From Obrimoposthia wandeli (taxonomy: Eukaryota): a DNA stretch of 64,000 nt. A program made the translations under genes and the position numbers. The stretch spans positions 806,001 through 870,000 of the forward strand of contig CDROCS010001044.1 of NCBI GenBank assembly GCA_977020255.1. The letters run 5' to 3'. Positions 14,501 to 54,528 of this stretch are shown in pieces (within the stretch, counting starts at the first letter, position 1; each line of letters opens with the position of its first letter). The notes below the pieces were generated by a model. It was not told where the DNA came from. It saw only the letters and a list, made by a program, of their open reading frames with translations, and made no database searches.

Positions 14501-15819
14501 CAGGGTGTCCCATAATGACTTACCCATGTTTTTTTTAAAATTATTCAATGTTAACTTAAGATAGAATAATAAAACTCGGACCATACGTTTACATATATTT
14601 TACCAATATATTAAAATAGTCAAATCTCAAAATGGCCGCCTTTTGCTTTCACCATAGCCTGTAAACGAGTGGTCACTGATTGACAAGATCGCCGCACCAC
14701 CTCCTCATCAAACTTGCACCATGTGTTAAGAAGGGCTTCTTTTAGAGCAGCTACATTTGAGTATGATTTAGAGGAAACATTGCTCTCTAAGATAGACCAA
14801 ATAGAAAAGTCCATTGGGTTAATGTCTGGACTTGAGAGTTAATGTCTGGACTTGAGAGAGGCCATACGTTCTTGTCCCAGAATTCAGAAAAATGATCTTT
14901 ACACCATTTTTGAGTCAAATTAGACGTGTGAGCCGATGCACCATCTTGAGTAAATACATAATGCTCTCCAAATGTGCTAGTGATCCAGGGTAACACGTTT
15001 TCATTCAAAATTTTGATGTATACATTAGTGTTCACCTTAACACCTTCATCGACGAATATCAGAGGGGACTTAGACCCATCAGAAGCAACTGCAGCCCACA
15101 CCATGACTCCAGTTGGTTTCTGTCGCTTGAAATGTCTTCTGCTACCTTCGGGAAGATCTGTAGAATGACGTGCGTAAATTCTATCATTTTGCTTATTAGC
15201 AACTGCCTCCACGGTAAGGATCTTCTCATCAGACCAGATAAATTTTTTTTCGCCGGCGCGCTTCATTTCTGCTAACATAATTCTGCCCCTGTTGAGTCGT
15301 TTCTTCTTGGAAGCACCTGAAATTAACTGCCTAGATTGCTTTTTGTATGCAGTCATCAGTAAATATTTTTTAAATATCCTATGCATTGAGGATTTTGAGA
15401 TATTCATAGCTTTTGCAGTTTTTCTCATGCTCCTATGGGGATCCCTCTTGATTCGTTTCATCACAGCTTCAGCAACTCGTTTTGTACGGATTGACCTTTT
15501 TCGTCCTAGATTAGGTTTCTCGAATGTTGTAGCCTCCTCATATGTCGTTTCCAGACGTTGAAAACCGTTTTGCAACACACACCCGGCTGCTTTACTATAT
15601 CACTGTTAGAAATTCCAGCATTTTTTAATGCAACAATTTGGGCACGTTTTGTTTCTGGCGCCATATCTTATTGATAAAATTAATATAGTAAAACGAAACA
15701 ATAAGGATGTGTAGCAAATATATACTCCATGCAAAGTTAAAAATCTTGAAGATTTTGATCGAATTTATAATCGTTTTATAATATTTTTTAACATGGGTAA
15801 TTCGTTATGGAACACCCTG
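14501..15819 (-). mobile_element. Full-length IS630-Tc1-mariner element, DD37D (maT) family
   Basis: 30-bp TIRs CAGGGTGTCCCATAATGACTTACCCATGTT and CAGGGTGTTCCATAACGAATTACCCATGTT (3 mismatches); TA on the right, TG on the left; 1319 bp; WSDEK...QDGA-x-SPDINPMDF with 37 residues between the last two Asp. Confidence 0.93.
14620..15664 (-). pseudogene. DD37D transposase, two frameshifts
   Basis: ATG at 15664 (MAPETKRAQIVALKNAG, HTH-like), a frameshift near 15550, a 20-bp tandem duplication at 14818-14857, and a GGHFEI* end at 14620. Confidence 0.92.
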
Positions 15820-28671: not shown

Positions 28672-30488
28672 ATGGCTAAACAATTAAAAAGAACGCTGCA
28701 AGAAGAAAACAGAGTGTTTAATGACAAATGGGAACTACAGTATTTTGTAGTGTTTAATAATGATAAAATGACTTGCTTGTTATGTGATACCGTAATTTCA
28801 ACATTAAAGAAATGCAATGCACACAAGCACTATGTTGCTCATAAGGACAATAACTATGCCAAATTAGAGGGGGAGGCTCGTAAAATTGCATTGAATAAAT
28901 TAAAAGATGGAAAGCTAAAGCAAAGACAAATATTCAATTCATTGTTAGGCCTACATCAAGGAAATGCTACGACCGAGGCAAGTTATAAAGTGGCATATTT
29001 GCTTGGGAAAAAGGTAAGCCATTTAGCGATGCAGAACTTATAAAGGAATGTATCGTTGAAGTAGTAAGATGCTTAGATCCAGATAAAGTTAAAAAATATG
29101 AAGACGTACCTCTTTCAAGAAGAACTAATACAGATCGGCAGCATGAGTTAGCTCGAAATGTAACTGAGCAACTTCAAAAAATAATGCAAAAGGAAAATGT
29201 ATATTACTCAATAGCTTTGGATGAGTCAACAGATTCACCTGATTCTGCACAAGTATTGTATTTTGTTCGTGCTGTAACTGAAGATTTTCATATATATGAA
29301 GAATTGCTCGCTTTAGGCACCCTTAAGGGAAGGTCGCGAGGAATTGATATTTTCAACAACTTTAAAGATAAATGTTCTGAAGCTGAACTAAATTTTACTG
29401 ACTTGGTGAGTGTGTGTACAGATGGCGCTCCATCTATGACTGGGAAGAACGAAGGCTTTATTGCCCATCTTAAAAGAGAACTCTCAGATCCAAATGCACT
29501 GATTTCTTTTCATTGCATTTTGCATCAGCAAAATCTCTGTGCCAAATATGTCATTTTAAATGACATTTTGCAAAAAGTTATAGGTATTGTGAACTATATT
29601 CGAGCAAATGCTACGAGACATCGCCAGTTTCGAAATATGCTCCTGATGAATGATGAGATAATCAGTGTAGATTTACCCTATCATTCAAAGGTGCGCTGGT
29701 TATCACAAGGACAAGTATTGGTCAAAATTTTATCTTTGCGAGCGCAAATAATTGAATTTTTTCAAGGGAACAATCAACATTGTGAATTATCAGATGCAAA
29801 TTTTCACCGAGATGTAGCGTTTCTATGTGATCTAATGTCAAAGCAAAATGAGTTAAATATTTCGCTGCAAGGCAAAACTAAATCAATATATGATATGTGG
29901 CAACGAGTCATGGCATTTAGAAAGAAGTTGTCATTTTTCAAATCTCTTCTCGCTCAGTCGAAACTTACAGAAGAACACTTTCCCCAGTTGACAAAAATAA
30001 ATAATGAATATGAAGAGTATAACTGTGAATCTTTCGAATCATACGAATCTGTTTTAGACTCATTAATCAAAGAATACAATGAAAGATTCATTGATTTTGA
30101 AAAGCATGATATCACCCTGAAACTAGCTTTTCAACCTCACTTAGTTGATGTATCAAGGGCACCAGAATATTTACAAATGGAGCTTATTGAGTTATCTGAA
30201 GATAATATTCTGAAATCTCTGTTTCTTAGTAAGGAAGATCCCGTTGAAATTTGGAAAAAAGCGGTAGAATACCCTCGCCTTCGCGAACATGCTCGTCGAT
30301 TGATTTCGTGCTTTTCTACGACATACTGTTGTGAATCCACATTCTCACATTTAACAAATATCAAAGATTCGTTGAGAACACAGATGACAGATGAGCATCT
30401 GGAAGACCAATTAAAACTTAAAACCTCCATGTTAGAACCCGACATCAAAATGTTGTCTCACAAAAAGCAATCTCAAAGAAGTCATTAA
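28672..30488 (+). pseudogene. hAT transposase, Buster/SPIN (GTF2IRD2/EPM2AIP1-like) type, one frameshift
   Basis: BED-like CLLC..H..H, ALDES, CTDGA, HCILH, VRWLS and YCCESTFS are all intact. The two ORFs join as a 605-aa protein if one A is added to the A5 run at 29008-29012. Confidence 0.93.
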
Positions 30489-36011: not shown

Positions 36012-36501
36012 TGAAAAGCACCACGGTTCTTGTGGTTACCGGATCGCTCTCGATGACCTTTGAAATCTGAGTTAACAGTAATACATCTCGTGTCGATCGT
36101 ACCGATATCTGCATTCAGTGATGTCTCCTGGGTGAGCAGCCTATAGTCTTAGGACAATGTAGGTAAGGAAAGTCAGCGAATTATATTTGTATCTTGGCCT
36201 TTAATGAATTGCCATAATGGACTGGTGCAAGAAGTTGCTGGCTTTGAAATTGCTGTCGGTGGAAAGTTGGCTTTCGGGTTCGGTGATGGGTGGTGCTATG
36301 GTTAATCTTAGGGTCAGCCATCATCATTGTGTAACCAACAATCAACCTAGAACTGGCATGGTCTAGACTAATCTGACTGTCTAATTAAAAAAAAGCATTG
36401 CGAGGTCTGGTAACCGGCTTTGACACAATGTAATTTCTATCCAGTGCCATAAATGTCCAGGTAAAAATTCAATTAGGCGCTGTTACACGCGGGTGCAACT
36501 A
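36012..36501 (+). pseudogene. Decayed 28S rRNA fragment (D7-D8 region and the following core)
   Basis: cgtaccgatatctgca..gtctcc..ggtgagcagcct..acaatgtaggtaagg.aagtc and tagaactggcatgg..aatctgactgtctaattaaaa..aagcattgcga..ttgacacaatgtaatttct..ccagtgc..aatgtc match conserved eukaryotic LSU sequence with many substitutions. Confidence 0.88.
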
Positions 36502-36977
36502 GGCAAGGAGTTAACTGCAAGTTTATCGACCTGTTCTCATCAAATATAAACAAGTATTCTTGACTGAGTTGTAAATTGATTTAATTATATTCCATTTAGA
36601 AATGATTGGTAGTTGATTTCACTTTTTTAATATTTTTTTAATACAAATATTAAACATTCCTGGTTAACTTTATTAATTTTTTTATTATTCTTTTAAATTT
36701 TCTTGTAATTTCCACTTTGTAAGCAAAGACTAAAACATGATATTTCATCTGTATATAGAGGAAATACATAGTTATATTTATGAAATATATTTTCAATCCT
36801 AGAATGGAACCTAGAATATACGTGAGTACCCACAAACCAAACATTCTTCACCTGATTATTTAAGTTCTCCGCAGATAAAAGTGAAGTATTTCAATTGGAG
36901 TTTGATGTATTTAAAGTTAATGAAACAAATGATACAAAATATTTATTTGGAAGATAGCACTTTACCGATAATTGTAG

Positions 36978-46349: not shown

Positions 46350-46475
46350 ATAAAAGGTATAAACCCTAATAAACATTGACTAAATAATTATAAAAATACG
46401 TATTAAATAATTAAAATTTTCGTAAGAATATTAATTTTAAACATATTTAAAATGTGTATTTAAACATGAATATAT
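46350..46475 (+). repeat. Left copy of a ~126-bp direct repeat bracketing the nested gene
   Basis: About 90% identical by eye to 48855-48981 (~11 substitutions, 1 indel). Confidence 0.9.
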
Positions 46476-47302
46476 GAATATCTTTTCCAATAACGAATAA
46501 GGGATTTAAACATTTTGCTAATCAAATTGTTTATTGATCATTTGAAAAAAATTTAAATATATTATTTTCATCTTCGATAACTTCCTCTGAGATATCTGTT
46601 AAATACATACTTTTTTTATTTCATCAATTATATTTTTCGTTGCAATGAAATTCTCCAAATATGAGTTTGAATTACATGCTTACATGTTTTCATAACTTTA
46701 ATAATATTCTATCGTAGGCATAATTCAAGACCTCGATTTCACAACACAATTTATATTCTGATTATTAAATATCAGTTCTTAAACAAATTAATGAAAGTAA
46801 GATAATTCTGGTTTCTGATTACATAACTTTCTTCATCGAATTTGTATACATAAAGGAGAAAGTAGATCGGTAGATGAGTTCATTCACTTCTTCAACTTTA
46901 TTGTTTACTGATAGTACATTTTGAGAGGAAATCTAATATAATCCAACCCATTCATATGTTCTTAGATTGAGAATGCAATTTATTTATTTATTGAACGTCA
47001 TTCATTTTTCTATCACACTTAATTTATTAAAAACAGACGTATTTGATTATACATTTAATTGATTCATTTCACATTTTGAAATTCGTTTTAAGTAAATAAT
47101 CTCTTTTTGATACATGATAACCTAATTTGGATATCCATTGAAATAATTTGAAATAAGTTTTCACACATCTTAACTGTCTGTTTTTTGAATCTAATTTCAT
47201 TTCTCAAAAATAATTAAAATAATCATTTAGTTACACTGAATTCTCGATAGTGGCTAGACAAAAGACTGTTCTAAAACTACAGAATTATTTATATAATAAT
47301 TT

Positions 47303-47397
47303 GGCCAATAGAATATTTAGTAATGAAATATTTTACGATATCCGAATTATTCGTCATCATCGGGTATAAATTTAACACATCTTAAAAATTGTTCAAA
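47303..47397 (+). promoter_or_regulatory. Putative Pol II core promoter of the nested gene
   Basis: CCAAT at 47305-47309, TATAAA at 47365-47370 and an Inr-like TTCA with its A at 47395, 30 nt from the TATA start and 90 nt from CCAAT. Confidence 0.5.
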
Positions 47398-48726
47398 ATG
47401 TTTCAACAGAAAGACAATTTTGAAAATCCTCAAAGTGAAATCAAGATGGAAAAGAAATTAGAGAGCAATAATTTACAGCAGAATGCAAGCAGTTCTGTTA
47501 AAAAGGAATTGAATCTATTAAATGGAAATTCTACCAATAAGGAAAGTGACCAAGATGGAGACAAAATGGAAATCGATGAGTTAACCGGAAACTGTGAATC
47601 TCCGTCAGAGAGCAATAAAGTTGTATTTAATTCGTTGAAAAGGCGCATATTTATGCGAGTAAATGAATTGTGGGAGGTGATAAAGTCGACGAAAATAGAG
47701 GATATTCATGAGAAGATACCAAATGGCGTGAAAGAATTTGTATTTTTTGTTATAAAAAATGACGTGAAAGGTCCATTTTTGACGTCAGGACAAACTTGCA
47801 ATTTCCCGGATGATTGTGGAACTTGGGACCGCAGAAAGACAATGAAGTATCAATATATCATAGACAAGAAAAATCGTATCCAAAGCGTGGATCTGATTAA
47901 CGGTGTCTATGGAATCAATAAAATACAAGACAAAGTTCACAGCTTCATTCCTGTTGAAGAACAATTGACAGAAATTATCCAACTGTTTCGGACCTATTAC
48001 AAGCTGGAGAAAGTACCGGAATTCTGCAAGAGAGTGACTCATCTGGAGATGGCTCCAACCTCTTTTCAGCTACCAATTCCGAACATTGCCGTTGTGGAGT
48101 ATATCGGGAGAATACCAAAGAACACAGTGACGGAACAAGATATTGCGATGACTTCTGATGAAGAGAATCGCTGCTTAAAGAAGTCATCGAGAAAAGCAAG
48201 GAAAAAGCACGAACAAAGATTTTTAAATGTGGGGTTCATTGTGAAACTTCTCTGGGACATGTCCAACGGAAGATTGGTTGCTTTATCACAAATTCCATCA
48301 GGAATACAAGAAAACTGTTTCCATGTCGTCAAAGACACTGATGACCAAAGTATTAACAATAAAAACAAGTGGCACAAATTCAAGGACGAATGTGGCTACT
48401 GGGCCATGGAAGAGTCTTCCTCAGTGAGGGCCTACTACGACATGACTAATATGAGCTGCAGTCGCAACATACAGCGCCGGGGTGGTAAATTTGGGGCTCT
48501 CAAGAAGGGTACACACATATTCGAGCCATTCCAGATTCAGCCTCGTGAAGTGCTGACATTGCAGCGTACCTACTACAACCTCCGTGGGGACGACTCCGGC
48601 TACCAGAAGAGAGTCACGAGATTCTTGGGGGTCCCCAAGTCAATGGGAATGCCGCATAGTCCAGCAATCGCTTTAGTGGAGTATGTAGGTTGCCACCCCA
48701 ATCCTATGGGACACTATTTATATTAG
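47389..48726 (+). CDS. Intronless nested gene; protein of unknown function with two tandem ~160-aa homologous domains
   Basis: Uninterrupted 445-codon ORF in AT-rich DNA (first ATG 47398; better-context ATG 47446). The internal repeat aa ~87-243 versus ~277-437 shares IPxGxxE, FxD(D/E)CGxW, LxRTYYxL, KRVT and IA(V/L)VEYxG. Confidence 0.9.
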   Translation: MFKMFQQKDNFENPQSEIKMEKKLESNNLQQNASSSVKKELNLLNGNSTNKESDQDGDKMEIDELTGNCESPSESNKVVFNSLKRRIFMRVNELWEVIKSTKIEDIHEKIPNGVKEFVFFVIKNDVKGPFLTSGQTCNFPDDCGTWDRRKTMKYQYIIDKKNRIQSVDLINGVYGINKIQDKVHSFIPVEEQLTEIIQLFRTYYKLEKVPEFCKRVTHLEMAPTSFQLPIPNIAVVEYIGRIPKNTVTEQDIAMTSDEENRCLKKSSRKARKKHEQRFLNVGFIVKLLWDMSNGRLVALSQIPSGIQENCFHVVKDTDDQSINNKNKWHKFKDECGYWAMEESSSVRAYYDMTNMSCSRNIQRRGGKFGALKKGTHIFEPFQIQPREVLTLQRTYYNLRGDDSGYQKRVTRFLGVPKSMGMPHSPAIALVEYVGCHPNPMGHYLY

Positions 48727-48753: not shown

Positions 48754-48759
48754 AATAAA
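48754..48759 (+). terminator. Putative polyadenylation signal of the nested gene
   Basis: AATAAA 28 nt after the TAG; the motif is common in AT-rich DNA, so support is positional. Confidence 0.45.
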
Positions 48760-48854: not shown

Positions 48855-48981
48855 ATAAAAGGTAAAAACCCTAATAAACATTGGCTAAATAATTATACAA
48901 CTACTTATTAAATAATTAAAATTTTCATAATAGTATTAATTTTAAACTATATTTACAATGTTAATTTAAACATGAATATAT
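48855..48981 (+). repeat. Right copy of the ~126-bp direct repeat
   Basis: Begins ataaaaggta.aaaccctaataaacattg and ends taaacatgaatatat, like the left copy. Confidence 0.9.
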
Positions 48982-49691: not shown

Positions 49692-50181
49692 AAATTTAAT
49701 ATTTCATTTTGTTGTTTTGTCTATTTAATTCTTAAAAATTGCGTTTTAAAGAATTATGCTGGATTTTTATTTTTTTTTCTAACAAAATTTTAAATTACTT
49801 TATATAAACCTTATGGACTTCAATACAATGATTAAGATAAATTCACTTCACAATTTAAGATAATTCATTTCACTTCACAATTAAAGATAACTTCTGGAAC
49901 AAAGATGAGGACCAAATGTCTTTGTTCTACTTTTTAGGTGACTCATCGATGACTCATCGAACAAAGACATGACTCGTAGATGACTCATATCCTTTGTTCT
50001 TTTAAAGTACATATGACTCATCACATGACATCATGAGGTCACATGAGGTCAAGGTCATTTGATGTCAAATTTCTCCCGAAATTTAATATTTCATTTTGTT
50101 GTTTTGTCTATTTAATTTTTAAAAATTGCGTTTTAAAGAATTATGTTGGATTTTGATTTCTTTTCTAACAAAATTCTAAAT
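49692..50181 (+). repeat. ~100-bp direct repeat pair (49692-49795, 50079-50181)
   Basis: aaatttaatatttcattttgttgttttgtctatttaatt..taaaaattgcgttttaaagaattatg occurs twice. Confidence 0.93.
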
Positions 50182-50902: not shown

Positions 50903-51403
50903 GTGAGTTCTTTAGCAATTGGGCTTACAGATGGATGTGGCCTATTTTGGGTTTGTTTTACTTAACTTAGTCTCTAATCTGAAGTTTTTTTTACTATTGT
51001 GATGCGAGGTGTGTAAAGAGTTGTGTTCACAAATATAACTAATGTGGTTCCCACTAATTTGTGTGATGTGTAACGTGGTTGATAGTGCTCTACAGCTATA
51101 TGTGTGTACCTGAAAAAGGAAAGAACTATATTATTACACCAACTAAAAATGTTTTAACAATTTGACAAGTAGGTTGTCTAACAACAATTATTTCAAACAC
51201 ACCGTAACAAAGAGATGACACCCTATTAGTTTACACTTCAACAATCTTCCTAGTAACTTAAAGATTATGTGGTTCGATCTCCGGTTTACAAGTCTTCACT
51301 AATATAATTCAAATTTACTTTATATAAACCTTATGGACTTCAATACAACAATTAAGATAAATTCAATTTCAATATAACTTGATAGACTTCAATATAAAGA
51401 TTT

Positions 51404-51571
51404 AGATAATTCACTTCACAATTTAAGATAATTCACTTCACAATTTAAGACAATTTACTTCACAATTTAAGATAATTCACTTCACAATTTAAGATAATTT
51501 ACTTCACAATTTAAGATAATTCACTTCACAATTTAAGATAATTCACTTCACAATTTAAAATAATTTACTTC
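51404..51571. repeat. 22-bp minisatellite x~7.5
   Basis: Unit agataattcacttcacaattta. Confidence 0.96.
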
Positions 51572-54528
51572 TCACCAAAATCTGTTTGATCTGTTCCGAG
51601 CTGTCCCGAGTTGTTCTGTTTATTCAATTCCTTCTGCTTGGAGTTCGATTAATTCTGCCTCTCACTTTTAATCTTATTTCTCTCTATTTCAACTCTCTGA
51701 GCAAATCCGCCTATGTATCAAGTTCTGTCTCTTAAGTGGCTGATTCGTTTTAAATAGAAAATTTCCGTCTTCGTACTTCTCTGTTCTGCGAATGAAAATT
51801 AGATTTACAAATCACTTAGCAGGTGCACTTACTTATGTTGCTCCAAGTGTCGACGGCTGGAGTTTCTCACGCGTCGATTAATTCCGCATCTGAATTCTTC
51901 ACTAAATAATAGCTGCTGGAGTTTCTCACGTGTTGATTAATTCCGCGTCTGATGATTCTCAACTAAGTAATATCAGCTGGGTTTTTTTCTCACTCGTTAT
52001 TAATTTATTTCTTCAAAAATGTGGTATTATCTTTTTCTGGGACTAGTTAATCAAATTCATTCCCCTACATTCTTGCACACTCCACACGACCTCTTCAACG
52101 TCCTTAATTATTTCATTTTTATTCCCTTATTTTAACAATTTCTCATTTTTATTTCGACCTTTGATTTTAAGGTTAGCATTTTAGTATATAATTATCATCA
52201 TTTGATTTATTTTTCACTTTCCTAATTTTAATAAATATAATTGTTGAATGAACAATTCACTACACGTTTCTGTTGCGAATTTACATTCCACCTAATCATC
52301 GTTGCCACTTCTAACTTCACAACCTTGTTATTTTTTGCATATCCTTCGCGATTGTATTGTTTTTTTCCAACGTGCTAGTCGTTTCAATTGTATATGATTG
52401 GCACCACCATCCACCAGCAGGTATAGACAAAAATTATGTCCACTGGAATTTCCAATCAATCTAAAAAAATTGCAACTTTTATTTAATCCAATTAGCTGAT
52501 TTGTGAATTTTCTGTTTGAGCTGATTTTGCGAAACAGTCGGCCTGTTTTATTAACACATAGATCAATGTAATATGGTATGTTTGCACACGAACAAATATC
52601 AGCTGTAGATGATAGGGGATATAAAACTCGTGTCTCCTACCAGTTCGGTAGGTTTTTGATTGTCCGATTATTACTATGTAAATTGTTCCATCCTTAAGAA
52701 TATCTTCAAAATTTAAATATGTTATTTCTGAAGCTTAGTGCACCAAGCGTAAATCTAAAACCATTGCGAGCTTTATAGGCAGATTTTCATTAGTTTTTAT
52801 GGATTCACACAAATACTAGTTTATGTATTCCATAGTTAATTTTTATGATTTTACTAAACAGCTTCTTCATATAGATTTTAATGATAGGATAGGAGATATA
52901 ATCTATACTTTCTTCAATTTGTAAATATTCATTTATACAGGATGACGTATGCCATTTTTTCGACGCTTTTAATGTCTGAAACATACAAAATAGATTTTAA
53001 AAATGTTCTAGAAACACTTCATAATTTTAAAAGCATTGTATCTTTTATACTATCACTGATAAATTATGGTTCTTTTACAGCTCATAATATCTGCCTTGTA
53101 ACCAGTTGATAATTCATTCGTCATTTAATATATATTATTATTTAATCAATACAATTATAATAAATATCAAGACACTATTACTTTACTACGATAATATTAG
53201 TCGAAATACTTCATATTTGAGTTTATTATAGTTGGACAAAGTACATATTCAGACTCAAATGGTTACACTACGACACTCAAACTCTTTTTTGTACAATCGG
53301 GCTGCGCCCTCATTCCAAAATGACGTTCTCGTGTTTAATTTCTACGCCGCTATCGTTGAAAAATATTTTATCAATAGAAAACGTGTAATAATAGACTGTC
53401 TGTGACTCACGTCTGATGTAGTTAACAATTATGATTTGAACGTTGACTTGGCCTATCAGGTCCCGCAATGCGGTAAAGTGCATTTCATGTTTTATTAAAG
53501 ATTATATGCGCATGTTGTTTGGCCAGAGGGCGATTGTGGTTTGTAACTGTATACGTGTGGTGAGCCAGTCTGGGCTATATAATATCCATATGATTGCTGT
53601 AATCGTTTTTTTGAATATGATGAGGAAAATGCGAATCGATGTAATAAAAAGTATTGATAATGTATGTCGATAAACGACTGAGTGGGCTGTGACGAACAAA
53701 GAAATGAATTGGAATTTGAAATTCTTGATGTGTTGACAGACGATGCCTAGCTCAGTTTTAGTAGCAATGAACCTAGTGTTGTGTGTTGTGTTTAATAAAG
53801 AAAATATGAAGAAGTTGGGATATTTCCAGCACAATTGAATTCGAAATTCTTCTAATTAATCAGAAAAATGTAGCATATGAGAGACTAAGTTGTTTGGAGA
53901 ATTTATTAATATCCAATAGAAAATCTTATTACATTATTCCGTGAAATGCAAACTTCCAACAATTATCAATGAACGCTTCTGACTCATTCTGTAATTGAGA
54001 TTTTGTCAGCAATTGTCTCAATTTAGGTGACAATGAAATCGTTCATCTCATTTGGTATCTGAAGTTTTCTACCTTAATTAAGAAAATAAAAAAGAACTAT
54101 TCTGCTAAAAATTATGTAAAGTCAGCTTGCTGATTTGTAATCTTTTATTTAATATTTGAATATTCATGTAATTGGTATCTTTGATGTGATGTAAATACAT
54201 TTTTGATGTACAAAACTTACGCCTGACTAATTTTAACTACGAATGTAACTTAAACACCGCTGTTGTTGGTAGTAGGAGCTTCTAGGAACTCGTCATTTGA
54301 GCTGCATAGGCCACTAATAAAACTGTAGATTGTAAAGAGTTACAAATAATATAGATTTGAGTTACAGTTTATGCATATACATGATAAACTCTTCATTCGT
54401 TAGAATCTTTATTTTCTCTTCTACTTTGAAAATTGTATTAAAAAAATAAAAATATACGTTAATCCTATTTTAGAATGCCACATAGCTTTTACTGTGAGTT
54501 ATGTCCTCCCTCGTATACACAAATGCAG

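Follow-up and report, generated by a model that had tools for sequence, protein, structure and literature searches.

A gene with two CG-1-like domains in Obrimoposthia wandeli, probably derived from a Mutator-like transposase

DNA-binding domains of transposases are known to have been reused in transcription factors, examples being the WRKY-GCM1, FAR1/FHY3, BED and THAP domains, and FHY3/FAR1 are host transcription factors derived from Mutator-like elements (MULEs). A truncated transposase that keeps only its DNA-binding part can also block transposition by occupying binding sites, as with the Drosophila P-element protein KP. The conserved CAMTA factors of calcium signalling bind DNA through CG-1, a domain that, to our knowledge, lacks an experimental structure. 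MULE transposases use DNA-binding domains of the WRKY-GCM1 fold, which are ancestral to transcription factors (Babu et al. 2006, PMC1702500), and fusions of OTU and PHD domains to these transposases have been described (PMC1702500). CG-1, Gti1/Pac2 (WOPR), NAM (NAC), SSR4 and At3g16750 have been united as a subgroup of the WRKY-GCM1 clan (Holm 2022, PMC9252788). Here we describe a gene at positions 47389-48726, forward strand, of a 64,000-nucleotide stretch of the Obrimoposthia wandeli genome (GenBank assembly GCA_977020255.1, contig CDROCS010001044.1, positions 806,001 to 870,000; hereafter the window), the product of which contains two copies of a domain with a predicted CG-1-like fold.

The computational analysis revealed an intact open reading frame (ORF) with an internal duplication and no catalytic part, MULE-linked homology, a fold class, and sister copies of the gene. 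We consider it reasonably probable that the product is a catalytic-less, MULE-derived protein with two DNA-binding domains, encoded by a small gene family and acting either as a repressor that occupies binding sites or as a transcription factor specific to the lineage.

The ORF is uninterrupted, occupies a single exon, and comprises 445 codons when counted from TTG at 47389, its first start-like codon, with a TAG stop at 48724-48726. The first ATG, at 47398, gives a protein of 442 aa, the next in-frame ATGs being those of aa 20 and 60. No other ORF of the window is longer. With 30% G+C, a random codon of the window has a 7.8% chance of being a stop, and the chance expectation for ORFs of 445 codons is ∼3e-11 (six frames, window base composition). 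When the two halves were compared by BLASTP, aa 108-243 aligned with aa 300-437 (138 aa, 30% identity, E 8e-17), and the internal duplication is therefore real. A preliminary description of the locus had proposed an intact 1.3-kb ORF with an acidic N-terminus, two copies of one domain, and a basic linker at aa 264-274. This layout holds, and the isoelectric points agree with it (4.6 for aa 1-80, ∼9.2 for each domain, and 11.8 for the linker); the six motifs that had been listed as common to the copies were all found in the translation of both. The gene and its closest signals are laid out as follows.

47365-47371, forward strand: TATAAAT, 27 nt 5' of the first ATG; weak evidence, the DNA being AT-rich
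47389-47628, forward strand: acidic, N/S/Q-rich low-complexity N-terminus (aa 1-80)
47641-48123, forward strand: domain 1 (∼aa 85-245), predicted to be CG-1-like and of the WRKY-GCM1 clan from an AlphaFold2 model, fold matches and conservation
48178-48210, forward strand: basic linker KKSSRKARKKH (aa 264-274), read from the sequence
48211-48714, forward strand: domain 2 (∼aa 275-442), a diverged second copy by BLASTP and conservation
48754-48759, forward strand: AATAAA, 28 nt 3' of the stop, a possible poly(A) signal; weak evidence, the DNA being AT-rich

No homologues of aa 1-80 were found, coverage by relatives beginning at ∼aa 85, and this segment is a possible activation or interaction tail. 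The linker looks like a nuclear localisation signal. Domain 1 retains P111, G113, K115, D141-D142-C-G-x-W146, Q192, R201, Y203, R215, E237-Y238 and G240. The G+C content of the ORF is 29-51%, compared to 17-28% in the immediate flanks, and G+C at third codon positions (GC3) is 0.44 in copy 1 and 0.55 in copy 2 (Fisher p 0.04), both far above the local G+C of 24-28%. This pattern may reflect codon selection, recent arrival, or a chimeric history of the halves.

Relatives of the protein are distant. Searched exhaustively with phmmer, 1.84 billion cluster representatives yielded 259 at E<=1e-3 and 31 at E<=1e-10, the top relative having an E-value of 2e-43 and 30% identity; none of the representatives was above ∼30% identity to the window protein, and no close orthologue was found among them. 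Pfam gave no match to the protein even at E<=10. Sequence searches of the PDB with the window protein and with the family profile produced chance matches only. A word-indexed homologue search with the whole protein returned nothing, and with the family profile it returned six short family members only and no CAMTA. No record matched the ORF product exactly, and look-alikes from a protein language model were uninformative (scores <=0.48). The domain had been called unnamed in the preliminary description, which is right insofar as it has no Pfam model of its own; however, it appears to be a distant relative of CG-1, and the 259 representatives match it.

The setting of the domain in larger proteins was examined in 63 long relatives, each with one domain copy, by alignment and Pfam counts. 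The domain part of their consensus reads IP.G.KENVYF ... F.DDCG.W ... PQP ... R.Y..LK....YKRR.TW ... A.VEY.G..P and continues directly into HGN.......Y.RT and then into the Mutator-like catalytic blocks D..TFN / GSD.E.A / C..HL..N. The Pfam domains counted in these relatives were:

MULE (PF10551): 33 of 63
OTU protease: 25 of 63
Transposase_mut (PF00872): 12 of 63
PHD: 7 of 63

In the relatives the domain is placed just upstream of the MULE catalytic region, and a profile of the downstream region detected the catalytic region in 75 of 150 listed representatives. Sequence comparison identifies the module as the DNA-binding-type domain that belongs to a family of PHD-OTU-(domain)-DDE MULE transposases from invertebrates. 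No catalytic domain (PF10551 or PF00872) was found by Pfam in the ORF of the window, and tblastn with 150 relatives gave no MULE or OTU remnant elsewhere in the window, with nothing outside the ORF. The preliminary description had placed similar segments ahead of HGN...Y.RT and a Mutator-like catalytic region; the consensus and the Pfam counts bear out this context. As it had also stated, both copies stop before the catalytic region, domain 2 ending on the H of the family HGN motif (H442), the only residue of that motif it retains and 3 codons ahead of the stop. Its suggestion that the repeated unit is a tandemised DNA-binding-type module, which in its original setting adjoins a Mutator-like catalytic region and here has no catalytic part, is thus in agreement with these data. 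Three C/H columns are partly conserved in the family (87%, 66% and 86%) and one is conserved at 34%; copy 1 of the window protein retains one such column (C143) and copy 2 retains two (C335, H442). The four zinc-chelating Cys/His ligands of classic WRKY-GCM1 fingers (Pfam clan CL0274) are not conserved in the family.

Copy 1 was modelled alone with AlphaFold2 from a 128-sequence alignment (A3), giving a pLDDT of 89.7 and a pTM of 0.84. A single-sequence AlphaFold model was useless (pLDDT 31), and copy 2 had almost no coverage in a two-domain alignment (A2). Foldseek against the Swiss-Prot models placed an uncharacterised worm protein first, followed by CAMTA CG-1 regions at a probability of 0.95-1.0 (C. 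elegans, rice, Arabidopsis CAMTA1-5, mouse and human), and NAC domains next. Among the AFDB clusters, family members lead (Lingula, TM 0.75), then come OTU- and SWIM-domain proteins, and CG-1 proteins after them, and a CAMTA cluster took row one of an ESM Atlas shape search (3.1 A over 108 residues). No PDB match reached E<=0.001 with Foldseek. A PDB search independent of Foldseek (48,161 chains) returned seven matches at Z>=5, including NAC 7xlj (6.5), GCM-DNA 1odh (6.5), SSR4 7k7v (6.3), WOPR-DNA 4qtj (6.0) and 4m8b (5.3), and WRKY33 8k31 (5.3), with further WRKY structures at Z scores of 4.2 and 3.8. The weight of this search lies in the consistency of the list and not in single Z values. 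The list coincides with the subgroup defined previously (PMC9252788), and the modelled domain was assigned to the CG-1/WOPR/NAC/SSR4 subgroup of the WRKY-GCM1 clan, and the structure matches in Swiss-Prot, AFDB, ESM Atlas and PDB are in line with the proposal that the module is of a sequence-specific DNA-binding type.

Sequence profiles point towards CG-1 as well. The relative P0003 scored 27.4 bits on Pfam CG-1 (PF03859), above the 23.5-bit cut-off, with residues 388-420 aligned to profile positions 81-113. CG-1 was also the commonest weak Pfam match among the domain instances (7 of 128, best E 0.0013), and a precomputed record holds one faint CG-1 match. The D-x-x-x-W motif, which stabilises the recognition loop (PMC9252788), is present as D142-C-G-T-W146 in copy 1 and E334-C-G-Y-W338 in copy 2, in columns that are 94-98% conserved in the family. 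On the basis of the model, the domain would be CG-1-like by fold and borderline by sequence, not a member of Pfam CG-1, and the module appears to be a zinc-less domain of alpha and beta-sheet elements closest to CAMTA CG-1. No paper linking CG-1 to Mutator-like elements was found in the literature, and such a domain is not mentioned in a survey of MULEs (PMC6446971).

The best sequence matches of the window protein (E 2e-43 to 5e-23, 27-31% identity) are domain-only arrays, all annotated as uncharacterised and none with a catalytic region. The arrays are:

Macrobrachium nipponense LOC135212631, XP_064102293.1: four copies, single 2448-nt exon
Macrobrachium rosenbergii XP_066938829.1: three copies, longer isoform of 1264 aa
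Mytilus galloprovincialis LOC143071537, XP_076102019.1: three copies, 865 aa
Mytilus edulis: three copies, >90% identical to the M. galloprovincialis protein
ENA protein: five copies

The M. galloprovincialis gene (OZ263148.1, L001:8001-21157) adjoins SRP72 and spans 13 kb for 865 aa, and therefore has introns; it is a better candidate for a true domestication of the module than the window gene. Two proteins, P0019 (1741 aa) and P0006 (481 aa), have two or three domain copies together with a match to the MULE catalytic region, so tandem duplication of the DNA-binding module also occurs inside transposases. When 128 domain instances were placed in a maximum-likelihood tree, repeats belonging to one array protein grouped with one another, and starred branches force at least three separate array origins. 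Judged from this tree, domain-only arrays arose independently in prawns, in mussels and in the organism of the window. A quick free-search tree had grouped copy 2 with three MULE proteins (SH-aLRT 95); this grouping was rejected, the tree holding the two window copies together being better by 50.75 log-likelihood units (p-AU 0.886). The duplication in the window protein is probably lineage-specific, a grouping that long-branch attraction would also favour.

Four runs, from one sample, hold the ORF; its flanks are covered as well, and the runs therefore behave like DNA. Word depth in three of the four runs was as follows.

X1: unique flank contigs 8.5-11.3; exact ORF contig 12.4; variant ORF contigs 35-48
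X3: unique flank contigs ∼6; exact ORF contig 6.6; variant ORF contigs 18
X4: unique flank contigs 4-6; exact ORF contig 7.3; variant ORF contigs 13-15

The variant contigs carry the same ORF segments at ∼92-93% identity and at 2-3 times the single-copy depth, which points to approximately three further near-identical copies, ∼7.5% diverged from the window ORF. No second copy of the ORF was found in the window itself. Similarity to the variants extends upstream to at least 47207 and ends near the stop codon. The main variant contigs (394-415 nt, and one of 569 nt of which 356 nt were aligned) show 28-31 substitutions per ∼360-415 nt and no gaps, and allelic variants in the non-coding flanks show 5-7 gaps per 8 substitutions. 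There are minor variants too, some of them frameshifted by 1-nt indels at 47730 and 48202. Of 33 differences listed in the covered range, 12 are synonymous and 21 nonsynonymous, giving a rough ratio of nonsynonymous to synonymous differences per site (pN/pS) of 0.44 against the main variant, with nonsynonymous differences below the neutral expectation (binomial p 0.023).

No significant pair of terminal inverted repeats was found in 38-58 kb, that is, within ±10 kb of the ORF, and the only inverted arms seen are weak (73% complementary) and AT-rich. Since some MULE groups are without terminal repeats (PMC6446971), their absence does not exclude mobility. The preliminary description had called the gene nested; no host exons were found around the ORF, and a quick Pfam look at the other ORFs gave only a split hAT remnant. 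That remnant, at 28672-30488 on the forward strand, is a hAT-type transposase broken into two ORFs, one with a Spin-doc-type C2H2 zinc finger at 28672-29043 (PF18658, E 9e-7) and one of 434 aa with a hAT dimerisation region (PF05699, E 7e-7).

The DNA binding, nuclear location, targets and biological role of the protein are matters that we infer. Each basic domain would contact DNA by an open beta-sheet face and the loop held by the D-x-x-x-W motif, as in WOPR and as modelled for CG-1 (PMC9252788). Joined by a flexible basic linker, which could double as a nuclear localisation signal, the two domains might read two neighbouring sites with high avidity. Having no DDE domain, the protein would occupy sites without being able to cut them. 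It could then act as a repressor or competitor of the parent transposase at the ends of the parent MULE family, or as a lineage-specific transcription factor with the acidic tail recruiting partners, two roles that seem about equally plausible.

Several observations weigh against this interpretation. Window domains 1 and 2 retain 30 and 29 of 45 family-consensus positions, compared to a family median of 37 and a 5th percentile of 29, and the terminal branches of the two copies are the longest in the tree (1.6 and 1.75 versus a median of 0.63). Given the low retention and long branches, the function of these domains may have shifted or may be decaying. Neither the window protein nor domain 1 alone matched CG-1 (PF03859) at the gathering threshold. 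The TM-scores against the CAMTA models, 0.33-0.49, denote a distant match, and PDB Z scores of 6.5 or less are modest, within the range where a common arrangement is possible. Moreover, SSR4 and At3g16750 share the fold and are thought not to bind DNA (PMC9252788). The sole runs that hold the ORF are DNA-like and from one sample, and both the copy number and pN/pS come from assembler contigs of that sample with an incomplete list of differences.

A competing explanation is that the gene is a domesticated host transcription factor, in which the module was captured long ago, tandemised and kept by the host, the extra copies being recent gene duplicates. Such a factor would fit an intact ORF with its own start and a stop right after domain 2, without flanking inverted repeats or a catalytic remnant, as well as copies that are just 30% identical and still retain the core motifs. 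The main variant copies without indels, at the pN/pS given above, point the same way, as do the domain-only arrays that are gene models elsewhere, including the intron-containing Mytilus gene common to M. edulis and M. galloprovincialis. However, protein collections hold no orthologue or relative closer than ∼30%, approximately three more copies exist at ∼92% identity, some minor copies are frameshifted, and both domains fall in the bottom ∼5% for consensus retention. The grouping of repeats within each array protein speaks for independent arrays and not for an old shared domestication. We therefore regard a host factor as rather unlikely, and the term 'domesticated', used in the preliminary description, goes beyond these data in view of the variants at ∼3 times depth, the frameshifts in some minor copies, the distance to all relatives, and the longest branches. 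Its proposal of long purifying selection on the fold is reasonable, but such selection may have acted mostly while the domain was in a transposon; it had suggested dN/dS in relatives as a check, and pN/pS against the main variant, from contigs of one sample, is only moderately below 1.

The opposite view is that the locus is a decaying relic, a truncated fragment of a MULE transposase gene with an internal duplication, or else an accessory ORF carried by a non-autonomous element, which is open only because it is young. Frameshifts among the sister copies and the long branches speak for a relic, the nonsynonymous changes listed include motif residues (F200C, W289C, Y337D), and the surroundings are rich in repeats, with high-copy repeats 500 bp upstream and 1.1 kb downstream and a broken hAT nearby. 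Yet chance would not be expected to leave 445 codons open at this stop frequency, nonsynonymous differences are significantly below the neutral expectation, the main variant contigs are gapless while nearby non-coding variants are gap-rich, and GC3 has not decayed to the local level. There are also no terminal inverted repeats within ±10 kb, and the copies have diverged to 30% identity with fold-defining residues retained; a relic thus seems unlikely. A further possibility is that the fold was kept and DNA binding lost, the tandem domains serving as a protein-protein or chromatin-complex module. This would accord with SSR4 and At3g16750, which have the fold without signs of DNA binding, and with the acidic tail, reminiscent of the negatively charged tail of At3g16750 (PMC9252788). 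Near-invariant family residues are also replaced in the window protein (N by K127 and D319; P-Q-P by E191-Q192-L193 in copy 1; K115 by Q307 in copy 2). On the other hand, the domains are basic and the linker strongly so, the D-x-x-x-W motif is retained in both copies, and the parent is a transposase, where the module is expected to recognise element ends, so we judge a role without DNA binding to be very improbable. The preferred reading, a catalytic-less two-domain protein of transposase origin, corresponds to a small family of transposase-derived genes that are coding, evolve fast under moderate constraint, and fall short of a proven domestication without being dead relics.

A direct repeat with sharp ends brackets the gene together with 0.9 kb of upstream sequence; the copies of the repeat are 90.6% identical and 2505 nt apart from start to start:

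46350-46475, forward strand: left copy, 126 nt
48855-48981, forward strand: right copy, 127 nt, beginning 129 nt after the stop

The window contains no further copies of the repeat, the depth of which does not track that of the ORF family. A search of the cassette with Rfam found no hammerhead or other RNA. The repeat could have originated by a local partial tandem duplication, or by an insertion that came to lie between two short repeat copies. For the 127-nt repeats, an origin from an LTR-like element or a retrozyme was considered but is not favoured, given the lack of an RNA motif, the lack of other copies in the window, and a depth untied to the ORF family. Read joints skipping the cassette were rejected as evidence for an empty site, their sides being just 20-24 nt and the joined repeat positions non-equivalent.

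Very high-copy repeats are located at ∼46707-46830 and ∼49840-50067, with a word depth in run X1 of ∼39,700 and ∼12,600, respectively, compared to ∼10 in the flanks. The first stretch lies 0.5 kb before the ORF and the second 1.1 kb after it, and repeat searches showed no relation between them. A tandem array of about nine copies of a 22-nt unit (consensus about AATTTAAGATAATTCACTTCAC) occupies 51376-51595, and a short block related to it is found at 49786-49890, 1.5 kb upstream of the array. The only Rfam match is an isolated fragment of eukaryotic large subunit rRNA at 36161-36565 on the forward strand (RF02543; score 65.7 bits, model positions 1902-2350), and no complete rDNA unit of the window is near it. 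On the reverse strand, a 263-aa ORF at 14787-15578 has a sub-threshold match to the ISL3 transposase helix-turn-helix (PF13542, 17.3 versus a cut-off of 27.4 bits).

A broader scenario, which we put forward tentatively and hold to be possible but doubtful, is that the CG-1-like fold is the native end-recognition module of widespread invertebrate PHD-OTU-(domain)-DDE MULEs, and that it has repeatedly been freed and tandemised, in two to five or more copies, in prawns, mussels and the organism of the window, as repressors or new transcription factors. If this is true, the CG-1 domain of CAMTA would be a further domain of transcription factors with an ancestry in common with a transposase module. 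A concrete scenario for the origin or exchange of CG-1 would follow, together with natural multi-domain variants for studying how a CG-1-like fold reads DNA, and candidate transposon-encoded or host-recruited repressors in invertebrate genomes. The window gene by itself is of moderate interest, because it may be either a host gene or a mobile-element gene; the link between CG-1 and the MULE family and the repeated tandemisation deserve more attention than this gene alone.

Among known systems, the CG-1 domain of CAMTA is similar in several respects. The fold match to worm, plant and mammalian proteins spans the whole CG-1 domain, both have an F.(D/K)D...W loop and a C-terminal pattern of R..Y / (K/R)R / (V/L)V(E/H)Y strands, and both are basic without a conserved zinc site. 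In contrast, the domain of the window family is ∼160 aa compared to ∼120 aa, and is found in transposases or tandem arrays and not at the N-terminus of a calmodulin-regulated activator; the window protein also lacks TIG, ankyrin and IQ domains (Pfam) and ends three residues past domain 2. The WRKY-GCM1 domains of MULEs, FAR1/FHY3 and FLYWCH (PMC1702500) resemble the family in their position N-terminal to the MULE DDE domain and, by the modelled fold, in their clan (GCM Z 6.5; WRKY Z 5.3, 4.2 and 3.8). The window gene also follows the evolutionary theme known from this group, the reuse of a transposase DNA-binding domain with the catalytic part left behind. Classic WRKY-GCM1 domains, however, chelate zinc by C/H ligands, and the window family has a larger core of alpha and beta elements, by which it falls in the CG-1/WOPR/NAC/SSR4 subgroup (PMC9252788).

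The KP protein follows the same logic of site occupation as that proposed for the window protein, but it has a THAP fold, arose by internal deletion of an element, and stays inside terminal repeats, whereas the window gene has no terminal repeats that could be found and a duplicated DNA-binding module. The invertebrate arrays are the nearest counterparts: they too consist only of repeats of the domain, and the prawn gene of M. nipponense is also single-exon, the difference being three to five copies compared to two in the window protein. What appears to be new here is a domain-only, transposase-derived protein built in tandem from a CG-1-like zinc-less module.

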